Source: Selaginella moellendorffii (lineage: Eukaryota; Plantae; Lycopodiophyta). Taken from it: a stretch of DNA of 64,000 nucleotides. The stretch is from NCBI RefSeq assembly GCF_000143415.4, contig NW_003314280.1, positions 682,001 to 746,000 of the forward strand. Direction: 5' to 3'. The notes beneath the pieces were generated by a model, which saw nothing but the letters and a program-made list of their open reading frames with translations, did no database searches and was not told where the DNA came from. A program made the translations under genes and the position numbers. This document shows, piece by piece, positions 19,915 to 54,746 of this stretch; position 1 is the first letter of the stretch; each line of letters begins with the position of its first letter.

Positions 19915-21740
19915 TCATATGTTAATGTTACACAACCCATGATTTAAGATACACCAGCGTGGCATCATCGGGTGAGCTGCCACTCCCCGTGACACCATTC
20001 TCTCCCGCCACTCCACCAGCCGCTTTCCTGCCTCAGTCGTCCGCTTCTTGGAGCTGGAGTCTCTATTCCCTGACCACGTCACCTCTGCCAGCGCGGAAGT
20101 CCGCGGCCACACCAGCCCATCCAGCACGTTCGCATCGGCCAACTCAGACCACAGGGCGGCCTCAGCGCCAATCACAAGCGCCGCCTCCTGCCGCGTCAGC
20201 CCGTACGCCAAGTCAAAGTCATAGATCCGCTGCCACGTCTTGTACGGCGCGCACCACGACCCGCCGCTACCACCGTAGTTGAAGGACGCGTCGTCACCGG
20301 TGATGCTCAGCGACGGCGGCACCACCGTCCGGTTGGGCTGGTCGAATCGCGAGTCGTTGAGCAGGAAGTCGCCGCGACCACAGTCGAGGTAGAGGAAGTC
20401 GGACGACGACACCACCGCGCGGTACCCCGCCGACGTCACCGCCTTGGTGTTGATGGCCCCGTTGTTCCACGTCTGTATGACCGTTGACCCCCTGGGGAGG
20501 AGGTCAGCAGACACGTTGACCGCGGCGTCGAGCAGAATATCCTCCCAGTACACCACCGTCTTGTTGCGCGACGCGATCATCGGGTACGTCCTGTTGACGA
20601 AGAGCTCCAGGAGGCTGCCCATGGTGGCGTTCCCGGAGGAGACGAGGCGTGAGAGCTCCTCGCTCGCGTTCCAGCAGCCGGGGGCTATCTCGTCGGCCCC
20701 TGCGTGGTAGAAGGAGTCCGGGAAGAGGGCCGTCACCTCCTCGATGATGTGCTTGAGAACCTGGTAAGTTTTTGGGTGTAGGGGATTGAGCTGCCCGGCA
20801 CCTGGCTCCGACGCCATGCGTTTGCTCCAGTCTTGAGTGTTGGGATCCCACCACATCTTTCCCAGGCATGTTAACATCTCTGGGTACGCCGCTCCCCATG
20901 ATGCTGTGTGTCCTGGACAAAAGCTTTGACTTTAGAAAGAAAAATCTGGAAGTTTTTACCTGGAGCGTCGATCTCGGGGATAACTCTGACACCGCGAGAC
21001 CTGGCGAAGGCCACAATGCGCTTCACGTCCTGACGTGAGTACGTAAACTCCGGCCCATACGAGCCTTTTTTGGACAGCTCCGGCTCCGACTCCAGGAGTA
21101 GAGGGAACGAATGCGAGTCCGATATGTGCCAGTGGAAGACGTTGAGCTTGTTGTAACTGAGAGCCTGGATGGTCCGAAGTATGTCCTTGACCGGAAAGAA
21201 GTTCCTGGATGTGTCCAGCAGGAGTCCCCTGTGAGAGTAGAGCGGCCAGTCTGTGATTCGGACCCCGTAGCTTATGAAGAGCTTGCGAGCTTGCGAGTCA
21301 AACTGCACCAGTTGAGAGAATGTTTCCAGCCCGTGGAGAGCCCCCCACGTTGTGTTCGACACAATCGAGGCAGAGTCACCCTCTGAAACCACCAGTGTGT
21401 AGGATTCGTCCACACCATTCTGTAAGCCGGCTCGTAAGTCCGACACGGAGATGACGAGCCGTGAAATAGTTGCTTGTGCGGACTGAGAAGAAATGCGAGC
21501 TTGAATGGACACTGCAGACCATTTCTCAGTACAAACTTGACGCTTGTACCTCGATGCAGCAGCTCGCAACAGCTTTGGAGAACCCGCAGGCACCGAGATC
21601 GTGAATGTTGGTGAAATCAAATGGCATGACCTGTCGATGGCCTCAACAATCTGAGGCTGCGGCCACAGAAACAAATCGGAGCCCCTGCAAACCTGCACGG
21701 ACCAGAAGATGAGAAAGCCGAACAGTCTTCTCATCTCCAT
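19915..21740 (-). CDS. Beta-hexosaminidase (GH20, HEXO2-like), signal peptide, one intron
   Basis: LWPQP, DESYTL, HRGLLLDTSRNF, NKLNVFHWHISDSHSFP, IPEIDAPG|HTASWG, HAGADE, LYLDCG, GAEAALWSE, WPRTSALAE. Confidence 0.95.
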
Positions 21741-21942
21741 TTTGTGATGTGAATCCTCTGAAGAAAATGTTAGCATATTTATTTAGAAGGAACGCGCGGC
21801 ATCAACAAATCCCACCTAGAGCTGCCGCCCAAACAGAAGATTTTATGGATTGAAGAAGTGAACAGCTCCAATGTTGTTTGTCCACTAGCAACTGTAGTCG
21901 GTGGTAAGTACAAGAAACAAAGCTGGCTTCTCACTCGCCTTA

Positions 21943-27862: not shown

Positions 27863-29689
27863 ATGGATCTAGAGCTCGAGCGTTTCTCTAGGCTGCTACG
27901 AGACTGTGGAGACTCGAGAGATTTAGGGCGAGGACGAAAGCTCCACCGAGAGATTCTTAGCGGTGGCGAGCACCTCAGGCACTGCAAGCTTCTCAAGGAC
28001 CAGCTGATACACATGTACGGGAAATGTGGGAGCGCCGTCGATGCCTGGGACGTGTTCTGCGGGATCAACGGCTCGGATCTCCTTTCCTGGAATCTCATGC
28101 TCAGTGCATATGCTCAGAATGGGCAACTGGGAAAAGCGAGAGAAGTGTTTGAACGTATTCCACGGCGAGATGTTTTTACATGGACGGCTATGATCACTGC
28201 TTGTCATTGCGGTAATTCCTTAGAACAATCGAAAAACTACTTTGATTCGATGCCGGAAAGAAACGTAGTTACTTGGACGGCCATGGCTACTGCATTTGCC
28301 GGAGCTGGGTATTTAGAAGAAGCCCGGATAATCTTCGATAAGATGCCCGAGTGGAATCTTGTGACCTGGAACACCATGGTCGAAGCATATTGTTCCAGCA
28401 ATGAGTTGGATGAGGCCAAGGTGATCTATGATAGCATGCCCCAAAAGACAATGGGAGCCATGACGTCGTTCATTCGTGTTTATGCAGAGAATGGGGATGT
28501 AGAAGCTGCAAAGATTCTATTTGACAGCATGCCTTACCATGATGAAATTTCTTGTGTAAGCGTAATGGCAGGATTTGTATATGACTGTTCTTTAGACCGA
28601 GCATTGTTCGTGTTCAACAATATACAATACCAAAGTATATTATCTTGGACATCTATGATCTGGGGTTATATCCAGATGGGCCACCTTGAGGAGGCAAAGG
28701 TGGTGTTTGACTCAATGCCTCTCTACAATGTGGTGGCTTTAAATGCTATGCTACAAATTCATGTTATAAACAGAAGTGTCAAGGAAACAAAGCACGTATT
28801 TGAGCGAATGTGTCAAAAGAATCTAGTCTCGTGGACTTTGATGCTTTTGGCATATGCCCAAGATGGTTATTTCTTGGATGCTCAGAGATTGTTTGAGAAG
28901 ATGCCAGAGAGAAACGTTGTAATTTGCAGTGCTTTGATGGAAATGTATACCCAAATGGGGAGTTTGGACCAAGCACTGGATATATTTCATTCGATGCCCA
29001 TTCATAATGTGGTTTCATGCACAATAGCTTTACAAATCAGATCCTTGTTAGGTAGCAGCATTGAGGATCTTAGGGTGATGCTAGAAAGATTTCCCCAGAA
29101 AGACATTGTTTCACTTAATGTAATGCTCGCTGAATATGCCCGAAGAGGGAATATGGACGAAAGCATAAACTTCTTCTATTTTGTAATGCCCTTCCACAAC
29201 ACCTCATCCTACATCCTATTACTTGAATCTTACCTTTACAATGGCCATGTTTTTTCAACAAAAGAAATATACGCAAACATGCCAAAAGAAAGTACTATTG
29301 CCTCCAAAGCCATAATAACCGCATATGCCCATTCAGGGCATCTGCTACATGCAAAAACCACCTTTGACAGATCTCTGTGTCGAGATCTTGACATGTGGAC
29401 AGCTCTGATTTGCGCCTATGGCCGTTGTGCGCAATGCAGAGAAGCCCTAGAGATCTTCCACGAGCTGGTTTCCAGCGGAATCAATCCCGACGCAATCACC
29501 TTCTTGAGTTTGCTCTTTGTCTGTAGCCACTCAGGATCTTTAAAAATCGCCCAAGAGTGCTTTTCTTCAATGGTGATTGATTACGAAATCTCACCCATTC
29601 CAGACCACTTGAGCTGCATCGTTGACATACTAGATCGCAATTTCCTTGACTCTTGGCTATACTCCAGTTTTCAATTCACTGATTTTTAA
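27863..29689 (+). CDS. PLS-class pentatricopeptide repeat protein (intronless; ends before a complete E domain)
   Basis: LIHMYGKCGS, many short FD-MP-RNVV-WT repeats, PDAITFLSLLFVCSHSG, HLSCIVDILDR. Confidence 0.9.
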   Translation: MDLELERFSRLLRDCGDSRDLGRGRKLHREILSGGEHLRHCKLLKDQLIHMYGKCGSAVDAWDVFCGINGSDLLSWNLMLSAYAQNGQLGKAREVFERIPRRDVFTWTAMITACHCGNSLEQSKNYFDSMPERNVVTWTAMATAFAGAGYLEEARIIFDKMPEWNLVTWNTMVEAYCSSNELDEAKVIYDSMPQKTMGAMTSFIRVYAENGDVEAAKILFDSMPYHDEISCVSVMAGFVYDCSLDRALFVFNNIQYQSILSWTSMIWGYIQMGHLEEAKVVFDSMPLYNVVALNAMLQIHVINRSVKETKHVFERMCQKNLVSWTLMLLAYAQDGYFLDAQRLFEKMPERNVVICSALMEMYTQMGSLDQALDIFHSMPIHNVVSCTIALQIRSLLGSSIEDLRVMLERFPQKDIVSLNVMLAEYARRGNMDESINFFYFVMPFHNTSSYILLLESYLYNGHVFSTKEIYANMPKESTIASKAIITAYAHSGHLLHAKTTFDRSLCRDLDMWTALICAYGRCAQCREALEIFHELVSSGINPDAITFLSLLFVCSHSGSLKIAQECFSSMVIDYEISPIPDHLSCIVDILDRNFLDSWLYSSFQFTDF

Positions 29690-30629
29690 AGTGTAGCATT
29701 TGGGACCTCCAGAATTAACTGGTTCTTGCTTCTATGTACTTTTACATGCTTTGATATGGGCAATTCCAAATTCTATTATACCTACAGCTGTAGGGCACAC
29801 TTCTAAGTAGAGCTTACAACACACCATGCTATATATCCCCCATATTTATGCCAGCAAGGCAACTTTGGTCATGTGGAGAACATCTACCATATTCTTTATC
29901 AATGCCCAAACCATCAGCATCTATGGGATCATATAACCCTTCATCAGGGATTGAGCATCCATGTTAGTGATGGAGGCTAGTTGTAGTAAATTGTAAAGTC
30001 TAAGTGATTAAATTTTCATTCTATTTTAGTACCACTTAAAAGAGTCTTATTTTTAACTTCCATAGGTCTACAGCAGTTTCTACTTGCCTCCGCTTGTTCT
30101 TCCTACCAAAACACTCATTGAGTTACATGGTGAGAAACGACCGCACATACCCCGCCACATGGCATCTAGCCTCAAGATCCCACTCTCATGGTGCCGAGAG
30201 CGCTGCCGCCAGGATTGCTGCTGCCCCGGCCGAAATATTGCCACCACGGCCTAGAATCCCGTCCTAGCATCACCCTAGCATTGCTGCCATGGCCGCCACG
30301 GCCGGATACTGCCCTCGTATAGCTCTTAACACCTGACAAAATCAATCTACAATTCTGTGTTTTATAAACGAATTCAAATTACACTGAGGTTAATTTCTTT
30401 GCTTCTGATCAAGCGGCCTGCATTTTGGTTCAGCAATTTCAATGAGGCAGCTGGATGAAAGAATGTATGAAAAGTTTATAACGCACTTAAGCTCTTGTCC
30501 TGGAAAGCAGAATTGACTTGGGGAGAGAGTATGGTGATAATGATATAATCAGGCATGAAACTTCTAACATCACATAATATCAGCTGGGGTGGAGATAGTG
30601 CTTGATAGGTGCCTAAAAGGAGTGCTGCC

Positions 30630-30730
30630 ACTCTCTTCTCAGTGCATGCAAATGTATCAGAACTTAGGAAAGCGCTGAGGATATTGGAGTTGAATCCATA
30701 CGTTGTTGACTTATATCCAACTTGTCGTTT
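30630..30730 (+). pseudogene. Decayed PPR E-domain remnant
   Basis: ctcttctcagtgcatgcaaatgtatcagaacttaggaaag...ggatattggagttgaatcca aligns with the E-domain remnant at ~38360-38500 (-). Confidence 0.6.
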
Positions 30731-30839
30731 AGGATCTTCTAATATTGGTTTTACCACCTAAATTGGGAAATAAAAACCGTGAAGAGAAGGAACTTTCATG
30801 TCTTTTGGTAATAGAATTTTCTTACTTAGGTAAGAAGAA

Positions 30840-31256
30840 ATGAAGAAATATTTCTCACTGGTTTTCTATTTATCTTATCTTGTTAATAAAGCATACTTTA
30901 TGAGTGATGGATATACATGGAATTGTTTACCTTATTCTTTAAGAGTTTCTAATGCAGATATTTGTAAATGTGAAAATGATATTTTTCATTCCCTTAATCG
31001 AAATCAAACTGGAAGACTATCATTTACTCATGGTCTTGTAAAAGTAACTGCATATATTGCAATCCATAGTAGTGTAACTTCAAGTGATTTAAATGAAGCT
31101 TTGAACATAATATGGGATAAATGCATAACACCTTTTAATAAAGGTGGAGCTGTATATCTAAGAAATGGGTCACTTAATGTAAGAATTGAGGCAATAAGAA
31201 CTGAGTTATCTCTAGAGGTATCAGAAAATCCTCAACTTGCTAAACAAAATTGCTAA
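30840..31256 (+). CDS. Putative secreted small Cys-containing protein, copy A (138 aa)
   Basis: Intact intronless ORF with a signal-peptide-like N-terminus; 98/138 identical to 37800-38216. Confidence 0.75.
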   Translation: MKKYFSLVFYLSYLVNKAYFMSDGYTWNCLPYSLRVSNADICKCENDIFHSLNRNQTGRLSFTHGLVKVTAYIAIHSSVTSSDLNEALNIIWDKCITPFNKGGAVYLRNGSLNVRIEAIRTELSLEVSENPQLAKQNC

Positions 31257-31499
31257 TGTAAGAAGGTTATTTTATTATTGACTATAATTTTAGTCATTTA
31301 TTTTTTCCAAAAATAATTGTGAAAAAAATTAATACTTATAATATTTAAATGCAGTTTCTACAATTGTAATATTAGAATTTTAAAACTCCAATCTAATGAG
31401 AATCTTGTATATTAAATATATGAAAAATAAGTCAATGTCATTTCTAATTGAGTGATAAATTTCTGCAATACCACTATTAATTTCAACTTCTCTAAGCTC

Positions 31500-31810
31500 C
31501 AATGGAGCTTGGAAGTCCACAAGCTCCAAGTTCCAATTGTTGTGCCTCCAAGTGATACTTACCTCAAGTGTTGCTCCTCTAAATAAGTGTTGCTTGCCTC
31601 CAAGTGTTCTACCTCTAAATGTTACTTTCTCCAAGTTGTTGTGCCTCTAAGTGTTATTTCCCTCAAAATATCAATTTTTATACTTCCAAGTTTTGCCACT
31701 AAATGTTGCTTACCTCAAAGTGTTGTGAAGTGTTATGCCTCCAAAGTGTTGCTTGTGTGACTTCACCTCCAAGTGTTGTGCCTCTAAATGTTGTTTGAAG
31801 TGTTATTGAA
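31500..31810. repeat. Imperfect tandem repeat (CCAAGTGTTG(T/C)(T/G)CCT-like units)
   Basis: Recurring aagtgttg...cctc units. Confidence 0.65.
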
Positions 31811-32630
31811 CTATTGCTTAATTTGCTAGGTGTCAAGAGTTTGTCGTTGTGAGGAGAGGAAATAACAAAACTGCTAATAAAAATACTAAAATAATGAAGA
31901 ATTTTCTTTTTATGATGAACATTGTGAGTATAAAGTCCTTAAAACCGTACTTTTCTAAAGGTTTTATAAATTAATTTAACTTCTAGCTAATCCAAAAACT
32001 TACTAGGTATAGGAATCTACATATGAAACTCATAGTGAGAATTTATTGTTAAACATATAAAACCAAAAGTTAGATCAATTGAAGAAAGAAAAAATTAAAG
32101 GAATTCTAAAATCACTATATATATATAGAGATGTATATCCTTTAATGTATCTTTATGTTTTAAAATTCTATGAATAATAATTTCAAATGATATTTTCATA
32201 AGAATACGACATATTTTCCTTAACCTGAAAAAAAATATTATATGAAATAAGTTATGATGTTTTTAAGAGTAGCATGTTAAGATGTATATGCATATATTAT
32301 GCAATAAGCTCAAAAAAAGACACATTTTATTTGACTCTATTACCAGTGTGAATTTTTATACCTTATATATATTTATATTTATTTAAATTATAATTTTAAA
32401 ATATTAATTAAATAAATTATTTTTATTTGAAAAAAACTTTAACTAATATTTTATAAAAAAATTAAAAAAATTTAATAGGTAAATATAACTAATAAATAAT
32501 AAACTAAAATGAAAAAGCTATTTTTTTATAAACTTTAATAGAGAGAACTATTCTTAAAAAATCTTAACATAAAGCTTTGAGAAAAGGAATAATGAAAATA
32601 ATTCTCAAAAAATTAATGTAATGTCTTTTA

Positions 32631-32633
<3 letters not shown>

Positions 32634-32700
<67 letters not shown>
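32634..32700. repeat. (TA)n microsatellite, insertion site of the LTR element (continues at 37711-37723)
   Basis: Direct reading. Confidence 0.95.
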
Positions 32701-32704
<4 letters not shown>

Positions 32705-32875
32705 AGGGCCAAGTGTACGGCTACGATGCCGTATACTAATATTAGCGTAGTGGATTTTGGTAGCCATCGGATTGGTTTCAATCCGGACCACTCGCTCCTG
32801 TATATAAGCTAGGGTTTTTGGGTTAATTGATATGCACATTTCTGTATTCCCTTTCCATATTCCATGCACTCACAT

Positions 32876-32893
32876 TGGTGGAGATGAGGGGCA
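32876..32893 (+). promoter_or_regulatory. Primer-binding site complementary to the tRNA-Ala 3' end
   Basis: TGGTGGAGATG-GGGG directly after the 5' LTR; complements ...CCCC.CATCTCCACCA; also at ~49484 in the old copy. Confidence 0.75.
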
Positions 32894-33107
32894 CCTTTGA
32901 TTGTCCCTTGGGAGTGCTTGGATTTGGGATTTCGGTTTAGATCTAGCTTTTGCATTGTCTAGATCTAGCTTTTTCCATTTCCTTTCTTTTGTTCTTTCCT
33001 TTCAGGATTTTGGTTTAGATCTAGCTTTTTGCATTATCTAGATCTACCATTTCTTTCTAGCTTTTTGTCATTTCTCTTCTTTTGCTCTTTCTTTCTCATT
33101 CATTTTC

Positions 33108-34040
33108 ATGGCCGATCCGCAATCTCCTCCTTTGACTCTAGAGCAGCAGTTGGTTCAATTGCTTGATGCTATGCGCCTGCAATTGAACAACCAAACTCAG
33201 TTGATGGCGGCGTTCACGGCACATGGTACAACTCCTCCTGCTTTTGGTGCCAATCCTCGCGTTCGGCCGGAGTTCTTTCGTGGGAATCCTGGGGATGCTG
33301 TGTACCATTGGTTCGATCACTTCACGGTGATTGCCACATATCATTCTTGGGATGATGCTCGGCGTTTGCGTGAGTTCCCCACATGTCTTCAAGGGACGGC
33401 ATTGTAGTGGTACAATGGATTGAGCGCAGCTACTCGTGGCGATTGGAGTGTTCTTCCGGACGTCTTCAAACGCGCCTTCGGACACACCGACGATTGTGAT
33501 GATGCCTTCCAACAATTGCATCGTCTTCGCCAAGGGCCATCTGAGTCGGTGATGCAATTTGGCGTTCGTTTCCGAAGTCTTTTGCTTCGTGCGGAGCCAA
33601 ATATGTCGGAGCGGATCAAGCTAGGAATGCTGTGGCCAGCACTTCGTCAAGATTTTGTCGGACTTGTGCATGCACTTGCTCCTGCCACTCTTGACGATGC
33701 TCTTCGCTTGGCACAACGTTATGAGACGTCGCCTCTTCCACTTCTTGCTACACGTCCTTCAGCTCCACTTCCTATGAGTGATGGTCCTGTTCCCATGGAG
33801 GTTGATGCTGCTGCTACTCGAGTCCAAGGACAAGGGCGAGGACGTGGTCGTGGCCGTGACATTCGTTGCTGGGCGTGTGATGAAGTTGGTCATACTTATC
33901 GGCGTTGTCGGTGCTTTCCGGATTGGCGACCTCCATTTCCTGGGTGGAGACCTTGGCGTCAGCAACGTCCCGTTGGTGCTGCTGCGGTGGAAGGTTTGGA
34001 TACCGAGGTGCATTCGGGAAACGAGGAGTCGCGCGAGTAA
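33108..34040 (+). pseudogene. gag with in-frame TAG at 33405-33407
   Basis: RPEFFRG, retrotransposon gag core, PVPMEVD, zinc knuckle CWACDEVGHTYRRC. Confidence 0.9.
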
Positions 34041-34079
34041 TGGAGGGACCTTGCGCGAATAAGTTAGTGACCCCTCCAT
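34016..34079 (+). promoter_or_regulatory. -1 programmed ribosomal frameshift signal (G GGA AAC + H-type pseudoknot)
   Basis: Heptamer in gag phase, 6-nt spacer, stem 1 34029-34037/34050-34058, stem 2 34040-34047/34072-34079; pol is in the -1 frame. Confidence 0.8.
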
Positions 34080-37000
34080 CTTTCTTTCGGGAGTATCATC
34101 AAGGGGTTCACTCGGCACCGGTTCATCCAGTGTTTACTTTCCAAGCTCGTTTTTATAACAAGAGGTCTCCTATTCTTCTCTCCGTGTTGGTTGATATAGG
34201 TTCGAGTTTATCTTCTATTGCTCGACCTGTTGCCACACGTTGTCGTCTACACTTGCGTCGTGTGGCGGATCCAGTTTTCATTCTTTATGGCAACGGCCGT
34301 ACACATGCATGTGCACGAGATGAGGCGGACCTGGTTGTGCGTGTGGGCGATCTCGAGCTTGAGTTGCAGTCGTTGCGGGTGGTGCCGAGTCAAGCTTTTG
34401 ACCTCATTCTTGGTATGGATTGGTTGCAGCACAATCATGCCAAGTGTGACTTTGAGGCTTTTCCCCCTTGTCTCATACTTCCTTATGTTTCATCCATTCC
34501 TCTCACTTCTGTACCTCTTCGTCCCTCTACTTCTACCTCTGCTTCCATTACTTTTGTTCCCCCATTATTTCCTCTTGTGTTTCCATCTTGTTCTGCTCTT
34601 CCCTTTTCCGATCCCTCCGATGATCTTTGTGTTGCAGCTGTTGATCAGCTCATGAAGGAGTATTCTGATCTCTTTGAATTTGACCTATCGTCAGGGGCCA
34701 AGATTGCCAGACGTCATCCCATTCCAACCGGGGATGCTCGTCCAATCAAGGTTCCTATTCGTCGGCGGTCACCCAAGGAGATCAAGATTTTACGTGCAAA
34801 CGTCAAGGAGATGTTGGAGAAGGGTGTTATTCGGAAGTCGCGGAGTCCTTGGGCATGTGAACCTCATCTTGTGATGAAGCCTGATGGGAGTATTCGTTTC
34901 TGCATCGACTATCGTCCGTTAAATGAAGTGACGATCCCGGACGTGTACCCTCTTCCTCACACTGCTGATCTCTTGGATCGTCTGGGGCGAAGTCGTTGGT
35001 TCACCAAGCTAGATCTTGCTTCTGGGTATTGGCAAGTACCGATGGCTGAAGACGATATTCCTAAAACTGTTTTTCGTACACCATTTGGTTTGTACGAGTT
35101 TTTGGTGATGCCGTTTGGTTTGAACAATGCTCCAGCAACTTTTCAGCGAATGATGGACGAGGTTCTTTGCGATATGCCAGAGGTGACGGCTGACTTCATT
35201 GATGATGTCTTGATCCACTCGGAGGGGACGTGGGAGGAGCATGTTCGTGATGTTTGTAAAGTGTTGGATCGGCTACGCGACGTTGGTTTAAAGCTGAAGC
35301 GGTCGAAGTGCGTGTTTGGGTCCAAGGACACAACTTATCTTGGGTACCGTATTTCTCGTGAGGGTTTGCAAGTTGATCCTGACAAACTTGTGGCTGTTCT
35401 AAAGTTCCCTACTCTGAAGTGTGTGAATGATGTGCAGCGCTTTTTGGGTAAGGTGCAGTATCTCGGTCGTTTTGTGGATCATCTTTCCGATCGCACTTTA
35501 CCATTGCGAGCATTGCTGAAGTCATCAACGTCATCTTTCATCTGGTCTCCCGATTGTGAGCGGGCGTTCGTGAATCTCAAAGAGCTATTGACGACTCCTC
35601 CGGTTTTGGCATATCCTGACTACACTCGACCTTTTATTTTGCGCGTGGATGCTTCTGACATTGGTCTTGGAGGTGTGTTGATGCAAGAGAGCTCGAGTGT
35701 GCCTGGTCAGCGCCATCCCATTGCATACATAAGCCGTACATTACAACCAGCGGAGATGAACTACTCCACGACGGAGAAGGAGTGTTTAGCAGCAGTCTGG
35801 GGTTTCGAGAAACTTCATGCCTATCTACATGGTTCTCGGACGTTACTTGAAGGTGACCATGCTGCTGTTACTTCATTATTGAAGTGGAAGAACCTGGTTG
35901 GTCGTACGGCTCGATGGGCTTTGAAGCTTCAGATATATGATTTCGATGTTGTTCATCGCCCAGGGAGTTCTATGGCTGATGCTGATGCCCTTTCTCGAGC
36001 TCCTCTTCCTTCTCCACTCACTTCTCATGTTTCTGATGAACCTGTTGTTCCAGCATCTGTGGATTTTCTAGATGAGGATTCTGTGCTGTCGGCGGTTGCT
36101 GTCCTTGACGTTCAGTGTCCACAGGGCGTAGAGCAAGATCTACCTTCTCTGGATGAGGTTCGCGAGGCTCAAAAGATTGAGCCGTGGATTCGAAGGCTTC
36201 GAGATGGGTTTGAGAATCCTGCATCACTTGCTGATGACTTGCCTTTTCGGCATTTACATTCTCAATATCGCCTTGAAGATGGCCTTCTTTATTTTGTGGG
36301 GACGGATCCTGATGCTCATTTACGGCTGGTGGTGCCTTCGGTGTTTATTCCGCGGTTTCTCCATGCCTACCATGATTCTCCTATTCTAGGTGGGCATATG
36401 GGACACCATCGTGTCACCGAGAAGTTGCGCAGATCTTTCTATTGACCAGAGATGCGACGTGATATTATCCGGTATGTGCGTAGCTGCGTTTGGTGCCAAG
36501 CTCGTAATACTCCCCCTTGTGCTGCGGAAGGACGGTTGGAGTCAATCGCAGTTTCTCGTCCATTTGAGTTAGTGGCGTTTGATCTTATGGGACCTTTTCC
36601 GCGATCGACTGCTGGCAATGAGTATGTTATTATTGCTTCTGACTACTTGACTCGTTGGGTGGAAGTTGGTGCTCTTGCTAGTGCCTCTGCAACTGCTGTT
36701 GGATACTTCCTCCTCAATCGAGTGGTGTTCCAGCATTCTTGTCCAGAACGGATTCTTTCGGATAATGGTCCTGCATTTATGGCTGAGGTATTTCATGTTT
36801 TGACATCTCGGTTGGGGATACGCCACACTTTTACGAGTGCTTATCATCCACAATCAGACGGTCTGGTGGAACGGCTCGTTCGGACATTCAAAGGGATGAT
36901 TGCGAAGTATGTGAACTTTCAACATTCGGATTGGGATGGTTATTTGCCGTCTCTTCGGTATGCTTATGTCACAGGGGTGCAGAGTTCTGTTGGTGCTTCA

Positions 37001-37504
37001 CCATATAAACTTCTATATGGTCATGATCCAATATTACCAACAGAGCTAGGTTTACCTTCGCGATTGCCACGAGCTCCTGATGCTAGGTCATGGGATCAAT
37101 ATTTGACAAGCATTCTTCCACTTGTCCGAGCAGAGTCTGCTGAACACTTAGGCCGCGTACAAGTGGGACAACAACGGCGCTACAATTCCCATCATCGTCC
37201 ACCAGCGGAGTACAAAGTGGATGATTTGGTGTTAGTCCGTTTTCCCCATCTTACGGTACGTGGTTTATCTAAGGGGCTCCTTGCGCAGTGGAAAGGACCG
37301 TATCGGGTGTTGCGGCAAGTTGGACCACAAGTTTATGAGGTTCGGCATGACGTTCAGCAGGCTGATCCTCCGGAGATTGTGCATGTGCAGCGGTTAAAAC
37401 GCTTCATACAGAGGGATCAGGAGCAGTTAATACCGTCTACAGATCCACCGATGCCTCCTCCTGACGTTCCTCCAGATCCTGGCCCATCTACAAGAGAACC
37501 CTAA
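34016..37504 (+). pseudogene. pol (PR-RT-RNaseH-IN) with in-frame TGA at 36443-36445
   Basis: VLVDIGSS protease, LDLASGYWQV, MPFGLNNAPATFQR, FIDD, DASDIGLGGVL, HHCC, SDNG, GLVER, GPY motif; no chromodomain. Confidence 0.92.
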
Positions 37505-37799
37505 CGGCCTTCCATTATTCCGAGAGGAGGGGATGATGTGAGGGCCAAGTGTACGGCTACGATGCCGTATACTAATATTAGCGTAGTGGATTTTGGTAGC
37601 CGTCGGATTGGTTTCAATCCGGACCACTCGCTCCTGTATATAAGCTAGGGTTTTTGGGTTAATTGATATGCACATTTCTGTATTCCCTTTCCATATTCCA
37701 TGCACTCACATATATATATATATGGAAAAATTATACATTAAATACACTAAATACTTTTTAAAAATTTATCTTGATTCTTACTGATTTATTAAGAAATAT

Positions 37800-38216
37800 C
37801 TAACAATTTAATTTAGTAAGTGTAATATCACTTGAAATATCTAGAGATAAATCAGTTCTTATTGGCTCAATTCTTACATTTAATGACCCATTATTCAGAT
37901 ATACACTTCCACCTCTTCTAGAAGGTGTTATGCATTTATCCCATATTATATTCAAAGCTTCATTTAAATCATTTGGAGTCATGTTACTATGTATCCCAAT
38001 ATAGGCAGTTACTTTTGTAAGACCACGAGTAAAAGATATTCTTCCTGTTCTATTTTGATTAAGAGCATGAAAAATATCATTTTCACAATTACAAATGTCT
38101 AATTCAGAAGCTTCTAAATGATAAGATGTACACATCCATCTATATCCATCACTCATTGAGTAAATTTTGTTTACCAGATAAGATAAATAAAAAATCAGTG
38201 AACAATATTTCTTCAT
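37800..38216 (-). CDS. Putative secreted small Cys-containing protein, copy B (138 aa)
   Basis: Intact ORF; ungapped paralog of 30840-31256 with 5 shared Cys. Confidence 0.75.
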   Translation of the reverse strand: MKKYCSLIFYLSYLVNKIYSMSDGYRWMCTSYHLEASELDICNCENDIFHALNQNRTGRISFTRGLTKVTAYIGIHSNMTPNDLNEALNIIWDKCITPSRRGGSVYLNNGSLNVRIEPIRTDLSLDISSDITLTKLNC

Positions 38217-38357
38217 TTCAAAACATAATTACCAAATAACATAAATACATAAAGACATATATATATATATATATATATATAGCTTCTGGTGGTAAAACCA
38301 AGACTAGAAGAATATTCTAACAAGAAGATATAAATCAGTCATACATCCCCTACTTAC

Positions 38358-39200
38358 CTTATACATGTTAGAGAGCTAGACATAGGATCCAGCAACCTGT
38401 GGATCTAGCTCCAGTATCCTTTGGGCAATTCTTTCACCCTTTTCTAAGTTCTGATGCATTTGGCAAGCACTAAGAAGAGTGTTCCATGCTGTGGCAGAAG
38501 GTGCCCCATCAAGTAGCACCCCAAATCAGCCATACACATGTAGTGCTCAAACTTGCCCACCACTACAAAGTTATCCCTCATCGACAAAAAAGTGCTGCCA
38601 CCCCTGCTCGAAAAGCCCAGCATGGCTGCAAGCAATCAATATGATTACAAATGTTATATTGTTGGGTGGACAGCCATTGTTCACCAAAAGAGCTCCAATG
38701 CTGCAGTGTTTGATCCATGCTTGCAGTAGGTGGTGAGCATGGTGTTCCAAGAGATGATTTTGGAACCTTGGATGTTCTAGAAGATCTCTTGAGTGCTAGC
38801 AAGTCTCAGCAAGACACTTGTTGTACATGGTGATGAGTGTGTTGCACATGACGATGTCCAACTCCACCCTATGCTGGCTGGTGGAGTAGCCCAAGTCTCC
38901 AATCTTCACACATGTCTTTGTGATCATGATGAATGCTATGTTGTTCTAAATCCCTGTGGAGCCAAAGGTGCTCATCTTGCAACAACCCAGCTTGCTACTT
39001 CAGTAAATGAGGCTGAGTATTGATGTGACTTGGTCATGCATTTAACCAAAGATCACAGCTCGAACACATTGTTTTCATCAGGGACTCACAGTTCATCATC
39101 TGTCAACTTAATGGCAAATACCAGGTTTGGAAGGTGTGAGGAATGTGGCTGCTACTGCAGCTTCTGGATCACAATCTACAGAACTCACCAGATTTTCTTG
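38358..39200 (-). pseudogene. Decayed PLS-E PPR gene
   Basis: FLSMRDNFVVVGKFEHYMCMAD and TAWNTLLSACQMHQNLEKGERIAQRILELDPQVAGSYV*LSNMY with stops and frameshifts; upstream boundary approximate. Confidence 0.75.
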
Positions 39201-52300: not shown

Positions 52301-54746
52301 GTTTGAACAATGCTTCAGCAACTTTCTAGTGGATGATAGACGAGGTTCTTTGCGATATGCAGAGATGACTGCTGACTTCATTGATGATGTCTTTATCCAC
52401 TCGAAGGGATGTGGGAGGAACATGTCCGTGATGTTTGTAAAGTGTTGGATTGACTATAGGATGTTGGTTTAAAGTTGAAATGGTCAAAGTGCGTGTTTGG
52501 GTCCAAGGACACGAATTATCTTGGGTACCGTATTTCTTGTGAGGGTTTGCAAGTTGACCCTGAAAAACTTGTGGCTGTTCTAAAGTTCCCTACTTTGAAG
52601 TGTGTAAATGATATACAACACTTCCTAGGCAAAGCGCGATATTTCGGTTGTTTTGTAGATCATTTTTTTGATTGCACTACACTATTGGGAGCATTGTTAA
52701 AGTTATCAACGTCATCTTTCATTTGGTCTCCGGATTGTGAGCAGGCATTCATGAATCTCAAAGAGCTATTGATGACTCTTTTGGTTTTGGCATATCCTAA
52801 TTACACCCAACCTTTCAATTTGTGCATGGATGCTTCTGATATTAGTTTTGGAGGTGTGCTGATGCAAGAGAGCATGCGTGTGTTTAGTCTGCACAATCCC
52901 ATTGCATGTATAAGCGAAGGTGAACTACTCCACGATAGAGAAGGAGTGTTTAACAGCAGTCTGGGGTTTTGAGAAACTTTATGCATATCTACATGGTTCT
53001 CATACATTACTAAAAGGTGATCATGCTACCATTACTTCATTATTGAAGCGGAAGAACTTGGTTAGTCATACTAGTCGGTGGGCTTTAAAGCTTTAGATAT
53101 ATAATTTTGATGTTATTTATTGCCTAGAGAGTTCTATGGCTGATGCTAATCCTTTTTTCAAGCTCCTATTCTTCACTTTCTTCTCATGTTTCTGACGAGT
53201 CTGTTGTTCCAACATTTGTGGATTTTCTAAACAAAGATTTTTTGCCGTCGGTAGTTACTGTATTTGATGTTCAATGTCCACAAGGTGCAAAACAAGATCT
53301 ACCTTCTCTTGATGAAGTTCACAAAGTTTAAAAGATTGAGCCATGGATTCAGAGGCTTTGAGATGGGTTTGAAAATCTTACATCACTTGCTGATGACTTG
53401 CCATTCTGGCATTTATATTATCAATATTGCCTTAAAGATGACGTTTTTTATTTTGAGAGGATGGATCCTAATGATTATTTACAACTAGTGGTGCCTTTCA
53501 TCTTTATTCCATGATTTCTCCATACTTACCATGATTCTTTTAATCTATGCAGGTATATGGGACATCATCATATGACTAAGAAGTTACGCAAGTCTTTCTA
53601 TTGGCTAGAGATGCGACCTGATATTATCCAGTATGTGTGTAGTTGCATTTGGTGCTATGCTCATAATACTCCCTCTCGTGCCATGAAAGGACGGTTGGAG
53701 TTAATTGCAGTTTCCCATCCATTTGAGTTAGTGACGTTTGATCTTATGGGACCTTTTCCATGATCAATTGTTAGCAATGAATATATTATTATTGCTTCTG
53801 ACTATTTGACTCATTGGGTGGAAGCTAGTGCTCTTGTTAGTGCCTCTGTAACTACTGTTGGACACTTCCTCCTCAATCGAGTGGTGTTTTAGCATTTTTA
53901 TCTAGAGCAGATTCTTTCAGATAAAAAGAATAATCACAAAGTATGTGAACTTTTAGCATTCGGATTGAGATGGTTATTTTTCATCTCTTTGGTATACATA
54001 TGTCATAGGGGTGTAGAGTTCTGTTGGTGTTTCACCATATAAACTCTTATATGGTCATGATCCAATATTACCAACGAAGCTGAGTTTACCTTTGCGATTG
54101 CCACAAGTTGCCAATGCTAGGTCGTTGGATTAGTATTTGATAAGCATTCTTCCATTTATCCAAGCAGAGTCTACCAAACACTTAGGCCGTATACAAGTGA
54201 GATAACAATAATGCTACAACTCCCATCATTATCCACCTGTAAAGTACAAAGTGGATGACTTAGTGTTAGTCTATTTTCCCCATTTTACGGTATATAGTTT
54301 ATCTAAGGGGCTCTTTGCTTAGTGGAAATGACCATATTGGGTGTTGTGGCAAGTTGGACCACAAGTTTATGAGATTCGACATGACGTATAGCAGGCTGAT
54401 CCTCTAGAAATTGTGCATGTGTAGTGGTTGAAACACTTCATATAAAGGGATTAGGAACAATTGATACCACCTATAGATTCGCCGATGCCTCCTCCTGACA
54501 TTCCTCCAAATCCCGGCCTATCTACAAGAGAATTTTGATGGTCTTCTATTTTTCTGAGAGGAGGGGATGATGGGAGGTCCAAGTATATGGCTACGATGCT
54601 GTATACTAATATTAGTGTAATGGGATTTTGGTAACCATCAGATTGATTTCAATCTTGACCATTCGCTCTTACATATAAGTTAGGGTTTTTGGGCTAATTG
54701 ATATGCACATTTTCTATATTCCCTTTCCATATTCCATACACTCATA
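49307..54746 (+). mobile_element. Old, hypermutated copy of the same Ty3/gypsy family as 32701-37710
   Basis: Diverged LTRs at 49307-49482 and 54571-54746, same PBS and PPT, colinear gag-pol with many stops, a deletion in integrase and a nested TRIM. Confidence 0.95.
51154..51746 (-). mobile_element. Cassandra-type TRIM (593 bp) with 5S rRNA-derived Pol III promoter in each LTR
   Basis: 194-bp LTRs at 51154-51347 and 51553-51746 (TGTAAGC...GCTTACA, 5 transitions apart); perfect ATTAC TSD; iMet PBS TGGTATCAGAG; purine-rich PPT; 5S-like GTTAAGCGTCCTTGGG...TAGTACTAGGCTGGGTGACCTCCTGGGAAGTC. Confidence 0.93.

Follow-up and report, generated by a model that had tools for sequence, protein, structure and literature searches.

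A tail-to-tail pair of orphan open reading frames in an inverted segmental duplication of Selaginella moellendorffii

We analyzed a 64-kb stretch of Selaginella moellendorffii DNA (contig NW_003314280.1, positions 682,001 to 746,000; hereafter the window), in which two paralogous open reading frames (ORFs), here termed ORF138-A and ORF138-B, are arranged tail to tail. A preliminary description of this DNA had reported two convergent intronless ORFs of 138 codons, and both are present exactly where it had placed them:

30840..31256, plus strand: ORF138-A, intact, 138 codons, TAA stop; GC content 0.29, GC content at third codon positions (GC3) 0.14
37800..38216, minus strand: ORF138-B, intact 138-codon paralogue, TAG stop; GC content 0.28, GC3 0.15

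Both ORFs are initiated by ATG in a common GAAATG context and are intronless. BLASTP aligns the two proteins end to end without gaps, with 98 identities over 138 residues (71%) and 112 positives, reproducing the identity counted in the preliminary description. At the DNA level, the pair constitutes a single gapless inverted repeat of 419 nt with 81% identity (30837–31255 and 37801–38219). The five cysteines described earlier as shared (positions 29, 42, 44, 95 and 138) do occur in both copies, with the spacing C-X12-C-X1-C, and a sixth, at position 5, is found in ORF138-B only. The same holds for the shared N-x-S/T sequons, which correspond to N55 and N109; ORF138-B has an additional one, N78. 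Short trivial cases aside, these are the only long ATG-initiated ORFs in the window with a GC content below 0.36. No additional copies were found in the window, and BLASTP gave no support for an internal duplication (residues 31–78 against 79–126). The two ORFs are genuine, though fairly ordinary, lineage-restricted orphan genes, of a kind common in plants. To the fuller claim, that they are real protein-coding genes maintained by selection and that their product is probably secreted, we give an even chance of being right.

At 29% G+C, stop codons are expected to be frequent. Indeed, each of the five alternative frames of either copy contains 7–19 of them, and none of 50,000 shuffled versions of ORF138-A was open; the open frames are not a product of chance. 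These data bear directly on an alternative that we consider unlikely, though by no means negligible, namely that a non-functional or barely functional relic, or an ORF arisen de novo in AT-rich DNA, was duplicated and that one or both copies stayed open by luck, perhaps with gene conversion between the arms. In a neutral simulation, 80 substitutions with the observed spectrum were placed at random on ORF138-A. The frame was still open in 2.4% of the simulated derivatives. The number of changed residues was expected to be 52.2 ± 3.5, whereas 40 were observed, and 40 or fewer occurred in 0.02% of simulations (p ~ 2e-4). Gene conversion does not create such a non-synonymous deficit. Moreover, the 417 nt of the ORF are free of indels, whereas the upstream alignment has 22 gap events over about 250 columns. 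Conservation between the copies covers the start codon and its context, the stop position and the first 20 residues, synonymous changes included. Within the first 21 codons, four synonymous-only and four non-synonymous changes coexist, a mix which argues that the hydrophobic N-terminus is used as coding sequence. Sequence identity reaches 75% in the predicted core (residues 38–118) compared with 56% in the linker and tail. Purifying selection on the pair is real but moderate.

The ORF138 N-terminus consists of two lysines followed by 11–12 mostly hydrophobic or aromatic residues, with a best 10-residue Kyte–Doolittle mean of 1.84/1.87 for the two copies. Such values belong to the top 10% among 119 non-secreted pentatricopeptide repeat (PPR) proteins, yet lie at the low end relative to full-length hexosaminidases with obvious signal peptides (1.9–3.2). 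The signal-peptide-like N-terminus of the preliminary description is plausible, but its hydrophobicity is marginal.

Several observations weigh against the claim of selected genes with a secreted product. Although pairwise dN/dS is 0.30 by maximum likelihood and 0.41 by YN00, the NG86 and LWL85 estimates are 0.69 and 0.81; the strong dependence on the method arises because GC3 is only 0.14. The 80 nucleotide differences are distributed almost evenly over codon positions 1, 2 and 3 (24, 26 and 30, respectively), and the Jukes–Cantor divergence of the ORF (0.22) is barely below that of the alignable flank (at least 0.26). The comparison involves two copies without an outgroup, and one of them could be an open pseudogene. 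If one lineage alone drifted, its chance of staying open would be about sqrt(0.024), or approximately 0.15, which favors the relic explanation, as do the lack of relatives and a composition like that of the surrounding AT-rich spacer. GC3 of the pair (0.14–0.15) is far from that of neighboring genes (0.41–0.81) and the nearby retroelement (0.43). Finally, conservation between the copies does not extend to the putative cleavage region, and a signal peptide and secretion, as judged from sequence, are plausible but marginal. The purifying selection proposed in the preliminary description stands in that stops, indels and residue changes are fewer than under neutrality, but the constraint is moderate; the dN/dS between copies likewise stays below 1 by every method, with the top values nearer 1.

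The pair is embedded in the following features:

27863..29689, plus strand: PPR ORF of PLS type, 608 amino acids, upstream of ORF138-A
30555..30839, plus strand: 5′ flank of ORF138-A, with the decayed relic of a PPR E motif (about 30555–30700) and a conserved block extending to about 80 nt before the ATG
31257..32700, no strand assigned: AT-rich spacer between the ORF138 3′-ends, GC content 0.12–0.38 per 200 nt
32701..37710, plus strand: Ty3/gypsy long terminal repeat (LTR) retrotransposon of 5,010 bp, with LTRs and gag, protease–reverse transcriptase (RT)–RNaseH and integrase ORFs
38217..38900, minus strand: 5′ flank of ORF138-B, with a truncated PLS-class PPR pseudogene fragment ending in an E motif

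The similarity between the two copies continues upstream of the ORFs. The flanks can be aligned over about 250–280 nt with 78% identity and the 22 gap events mentioned above, and they include a block significant in BLASTN (30630–30672 against 38439–38482, 86%). A decayed PPR E-motif is located about 130–150 nt upstream of each copy. On the ORF138-B side, the PPR fragment (from about 38900 to about 38350, minus strand) retains the final PPR motifs along with the E motif, interrupted by in-frame stops and frameshifts, and an (AT)12 run (38257–38281) lies immediately upstream of the ATG. Downstream, the similarity ends at the stop codons, and what resemblance there is in the 3′ regions does not exceed that expected of AT-rich sequence. 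The duplicated unit thus comprises the 3′-terminal part of a PLS-class PPR gene, about 140 nt of spacer and ORF138. Since the same PPR relic lies upstream of both copies, the arrangement reflects an inverted segmental duplication and not two transposon insertions. In both copies, the composition switches sharply at the truncated E motif, showing that the AT-rich block joined the PPR remnant before the duplication. The history that best explains these features begins with an old inverted segmental duplication (dS about 0.3–0.6) that copied the PPR 3′-end, the short spacer and ORF138. The PPR parts then decayed, while both ORFs stayed free of stops and indels and accumulated fewer residue changes than neutral drift would produce.

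The 608-residue PPR ORF is separated from its E-motif relic (about 30555–30700) by some 870 nt of unrelated sequence, and it ends with the motif usually found ahead of E. An insertion probably disrupted the PPR gene, and the open 608-residue ORF may itself be a truncated gene. A GC-rich piece (about 30140–30310) is found inside the separating sequence. At the end of the PPR relic of copy B (38340–38360, minus strand), a match to the 5′ splice-donor consensus, AAG|GTAAGT, directly follows the E motif. Copy A has lost the corresponding 50 nt, and a conserved acceptor ahead of the ORF was not seen. We also considered whether ORF138 derives by degeneration from the E2/DYW tail of the upstream PPR gene. 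This was rejected, as ORF138 has no DYW match in Pfam and a very different composition, and the PPR relics carry stops.

Might ORF138 instead belong to a transposable element, as an accessory ORF or one that it captured, with the two copies representing two insertions? Retroelements do occur in the neighborhood and ORF138 has no cellular relatives, but we find this very unlikely. Apart from the shared PPR relic, which indicates a host segmental duplication rather than transposition, both ORFs lie outside the LTR element, the ends of which are set by its LTRs, a primer-binding-like site and a polypurine tract. Neither terminal repeats around ORF138 nor further copies were found in the window, and no match to transposable-element protein families was detected in Pfam. 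The LTRs (32701–32874 and 37537–37710) begin with TG, end with CA, are unusually short (174 nt) and are 99% identical. Gag and pol are in different frames, each with one in-frame stop (at about 33405 in gag and about 36443 in pol). The element is inserted into an (AT)n run; an (AT)34 run occupies 32634–32701, at the end of the AT-rich spacer. It is a young, nearly intact element that was inserted after the ORF138 duplication and does not belong to the gene pair.

The "decaying transposon island" of the preliminary description does not fit this picture, in which an inverted segmental duplication that includes a PPR 3′-end has the ORF138 genes as its arms, and the intervening element, given its 99% LTR identity, is young. 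A related statement, that the neighboring PPR and transposon sequences are full of stops, is true of the E-motif relic and of the PPR fragment upstream of copy B, but neither of the PPR ORF at 27863–29689, open over 608 residues, nor of the nearly intact retroelement. Elsewhere in the window, an RT/RNaseH relic occupies 52475–53488, and the translation of an ORF within it (53267–53488) is close to that of an out-of-frame ORF (36153–36389) of the young gypsy element; the relic resembles an earlier, now decayed member of the gypsy element's family, richer in AT than the young one. Just 3′ of ORF138-A, a minisatellite with 32–36-nt units spans 31532–31660, and similar units continue to about 31800.

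Before the retroelement insertion, the stop codons of ORF138-A and ORF138-B were only about 1.5 kb apart (spacer 31257–32700 plus 37711–37799). Inverted duplication of a target gene is a model for the origin of new plant small-RNA loci, and the ORF138 arrangement fits it: read-through of the 419-nt inverted arms would yield a long hairpin and, from it, small interfering RNAs, as in proto-microRNA loci. Nevertheless, we rate an RNA locus as very improbable. The arms are only 81% complementary, with no sign of compensatory maintenance, and the loop now contains a 5-kb retroelement. Moreover, both frames are intact and show a non-synonymous deficit, neither of which is required of an RNA stem. 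Rfam matches were absent from the entire window. A bacterial-type promoter and terminator scan was also run and is uninformative for plant DNA.

Turning to possible relatives, the ORF138 genes had been described as unrecognised, and our searches agree. With full-length, mature and core pieces of both copies, Pfam returned only sub-threshold noise at E ≤ 10 (Cap15_TM, AAA_lid_8 and UBA_RAD5A), and a search of PHROGs gave no match. A HMMER search of 1.84 billion representative proteins, with no length window, yielded no true relative and a single match; the latter, an 840-residue tandem-repeat protein aligned three times to one 35-residue stretch, was discarded as a repeat artefact. The exact ORF138 sequences are absent from a collection of 15 billion proteins, a word search for relatives was empty, and a literature search on three conserved ORF138 peptide motifs found no paper. 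Thus, no clear match to a known plant family or transposon ORF emerged. Among PDB sequences, the only matches were MADS/MEF2 domains of MEF2 (E 0.1–0.3) and a complex-I subunit. ORF138 residues 41–90 (30960–31106) share about one-third identity over 50 residues with animal MEF2A/C (E 0.1–0.2), in what was the sole match of any sort at the sequence level. We judged the resemblance to MEF2 and complex I to be due to chance, as there is no SRF-TF match in Pfam and the secondary structure differs.

The lack of relatives should be viewed in the light of the neighboring genes. The closest database relatives of the 608-residue PPR protein come from Selaginella, Ginkgo and conifers with only 26–33% identity, and the GH20 hexosaminidase piece, queried as a single ORF piece, has at most 57% identity to any database protein. 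These values suggest that the source lineage is poorly represented in protein collections, which weakens the argument from absent relatives.

The preliminary description also raised horizontal acquisition. Searches for relatives in viral, prokaryotic and metagenome collections, including back-translated scans of viral contigs (run twice), prokaryotic genomes and metagenomes, produced no confirmed ORF138 match and no donor. Since the surrounding spacer is equally AT-rich, local composition explains the low GC3 of ORF138 without invoking foreign DNA, and the proposal thus finds no backing. Even so, the extreme AT-richness relative to neighboring genes may leave room for a foreign or de novo origin.

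Next, we focused on structural features. AlphaFold models were built from an alignment of the two ORF138 copies only. For full-length ORF138-A (predicted local distance difference test, pLDDT, 38; predicted template-modeling score, pTM, 0.34), the N-terminus is disordered and the predicted topology is helix 38–53, strands 58–64 and 67–75, helix 81–95, and strands 102–107 and 110–118. The model of the mature part of ORF138-B (pLDDT 46, pTM 0.47) agrees in the first helix, the hairpin and the second helix. Searched against PDB with Foldseek, the ORF138-A model has as its top matches the tandem DUF26 ectodomains of PDLP5/8 (6gre and 6grf; E 0.013–0.07, probability 0.95–0.98), followed by the fungal lectins LDL (4nds) and Y3 (5v6i) and by ginkbilobin-2 (3a2e; template-modeling (TM) score 0.42–0.50). 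For the ORF138-B model, the best match is once more 6grf (E 0.057, probability 0.77), followed by Y3 and the KP4-like effector Zt-KP4, with LDL and ginkbilobin-2 lower in the list. Both lists are coherent at the top. The DUF26 matches, obtained with these low-confidence models, have TM scores of 0.33–0.42, and those to LDL and Y3 are weak (E 0.13–1.1, TM 0.33–0.49). A search of one of the models against viral structures returned an incoherent list.

The DUF26 fold consists of two small helices on a central antiparallel β-sheet and is related to the fungal lectins LDL and Y3 (PMC6368629). The hallmark of the family is a C-X8-C-X2-C motif, with six conserved cysteines forming three disulfides, only one of which is kept in LDL and Y3 (PMC6368629). 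To obtain a set of real DUF26 sequences, we scanned metagenome contigs with the back-translated pattern QCTPDL-x4-C-x2-C; 120 loci provided 84 DUF26-A and 110 DUF26-B domains. All 40 sampled domains matched PF01657 (best E 1.7e-29), and four of the conserved cysteines were invariant in the 40-sequence alignment.

Several results count against a DUF26 assignment, and tests with this set of domains gave no significant sequence signal. The AlphaFold models of both copies are low-confidence, and with neither model did Foldseek find a PDB match at E ≤ 0.001. PF01657 (Stress-antifung) was not matched at E ≤ 10 by full-length, mature or core sequences of either copy, and a regular-expression search showed that ORF138 lacks both the C-X8-C-X2-C motif and the six-cysteine pattern. 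Hidden Markov models built from the 84 DUF26-A and 110 DUF26-B domains (hmmsearch with filters off) gave ORF138 scores of −1 to 0 bits, no higher than those of 1000 shuffled sequences. Alignment of the ORF138 pair with the DUF26 profiles by hhalign gave a probability of 0.8–3.1% (P 0.015–0.068), and 1.9% of 370 column-shuffled controls reached the observed score. In the hhalign register, ORF138 residues 66–117 fall on the second half of DUF26, with GG...SLNVRIE placed on GG...C.lRYe, as the predicted topology would have it. Read in this way, the cysteines of the motif would all be replaced, as would the partner of the third one, and C29–C95 could be equivalent to the remaining disulfide. Membership of ORF138 in DUF26 is not shown, and a DUF26/lectin-like sandwich is the only structural lead; taken alone, a lectin-like fold, as suggested by the models, is an unlikely, though not negligible, possibility.

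In the course of the scan, we observed that many JGI/ENA metagenome contigs (L001–L120) carry plant genes for cysteine-rich receptor-like kinases or DUF26 proteins, several with two in tandem. This indicates that host-plant DNA is well represented in these collections, which are therefore usable as a plant reference source.

Among known proteins, ginkbilobin-2 and other single-DUF26 secreted proteins (sdCRRSPs; PF01657) offer a comparison from land plants. They combine an N-terminal export signal with one small domain, as ORF138 may do, have precursors of about 130–140 residues, similar to ORF138, and their order of helices and hairpins fits the prediction. On the other hand, ORF138 has extra cysteines at positions 42, 44 and 138, and its gene is extremely AT-rich. 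The lectins LDL (Lyophyllum decastes) and Y3 (Coprinus comatus) are small α+β sandwiches that have the DUF26 fold with little sequence similarity, but they come from another kingdom and have no sequence similarity to ORF138. In being short and intronless, lying in an AT-rich setting, having a local duplicate and a rather rapid evolution (dN/dS 0.3–0.8), and lacking relatives, ORF138 also resembles lineage-specific genes for small secreted plant proteins, which are a descriptive class rather than a family, so that membership is silent on mechanism.

The preliminary description had pointed to fungal killer toxins and effectors resembling KP4 or Ecp2; in this reading, ORF138 would belong to a KP4/KP6/Ecp2-like family, possibly acquired horizontally from a fungus. 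The product is small, has cysteines and a hydrophobic N-terminus, its predicted α+β sandwich matches the general architecture of KP4, and its GC3 is far from that of host genes. KP4-like effectors such as Zt-KP4 (8acx) are themselves small secreted α/β-sandwich proteins, and Zt-KP4 occupies Foldseek ranks 4–6 for the ORF138-B model. These matches, however, have E values of 0.57–1.6, probabilities of at most 0.12 and TM scores of 0.19–0.30; they rank below DUF26 and lectin matches that are themselves non-significant and fall outside the top 50 for the ORF138-A model, whereas DUF26 ranks first for both. The cysteine framework differs as well: KP4 has ten cysteines in five disulfides, and the ORF138 copies share only five cysteines. 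No KP4 or Hce2 match was found in Pfam at E ≤ 10, neither a fungal nor any other homologue appeared among the 1.84 billion representatives, and the low GC is that of the local AT-rich DNA. We accordingly see a KP4/KP6/Ecp2-like family as hardly probable at all, and the resemblance is not upheld.

Returning to the reading of ORF138 as a pair of selected genes, their product would be a lineage-restricted land-plant protein of about 15 kDa encoded by intronless genes, with a short hydrophobic N-terminus, possibly a signal peptide, followed by a core (residues of about 38–118) of helix, β-hairpin, helix and β-hairpin. If such a protein is expressed and exported, its likeliest action would be that of a small extracellular α+β sandwich binding a carbohydrate or cell-wall ligand, in the manner of ginkbilobin-2 and the fungal lectins. 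It might then work in defence or in recognition at the cell surface, as opposed to forming pores like a killer toxin. With low confidence, we put forward that its role is lectin-like or antifungal. A bolder proposal is that ORF138 founds an unseen family of small secreted plant proteins, either a divergent DUF26/lectin branch without the cysteine motif or a new fold, which acts in extracellular defence or recognition in an under-sampled lineage; this we regard as distinctly unlikely.

Should the proteins prove to be expressed and secreted, they would add an extracellular small-protein family of plants that is invisible to current sequence methods. If the DUF26-like fold is true, a lectin-like antifungal fold would persist in plants without the C-X8-C-X2-C disulfide framework, as it does in the fungal lectins. 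This would bear on the origin of DUF26 and on the number of such proteins overlooked by annotation pipelines. If they are not expressed, the pair would be one example among many plant orphan ORFs, still illustrating how selection on AT-rich open frames can be assessed without an outgroup.

The other ORFs near the pair indicate a land-plant context. Besides the PLS-type PPR of 608 residues, they encode a GH20 hexosaminidase, PP2C, exons of a poly(A) polymerase, and Rad9. The HEXO2-like GH20 hexosaminidase (19915–21776, minus strand) is divided between two ORFs with a 7-nt overlap (20871–20877) and with GC3 values of 0.61 and 0.81 for the two halves. The split could represent a frameshift, due to either pseudogenization or a sequencing error, or a very short intron.

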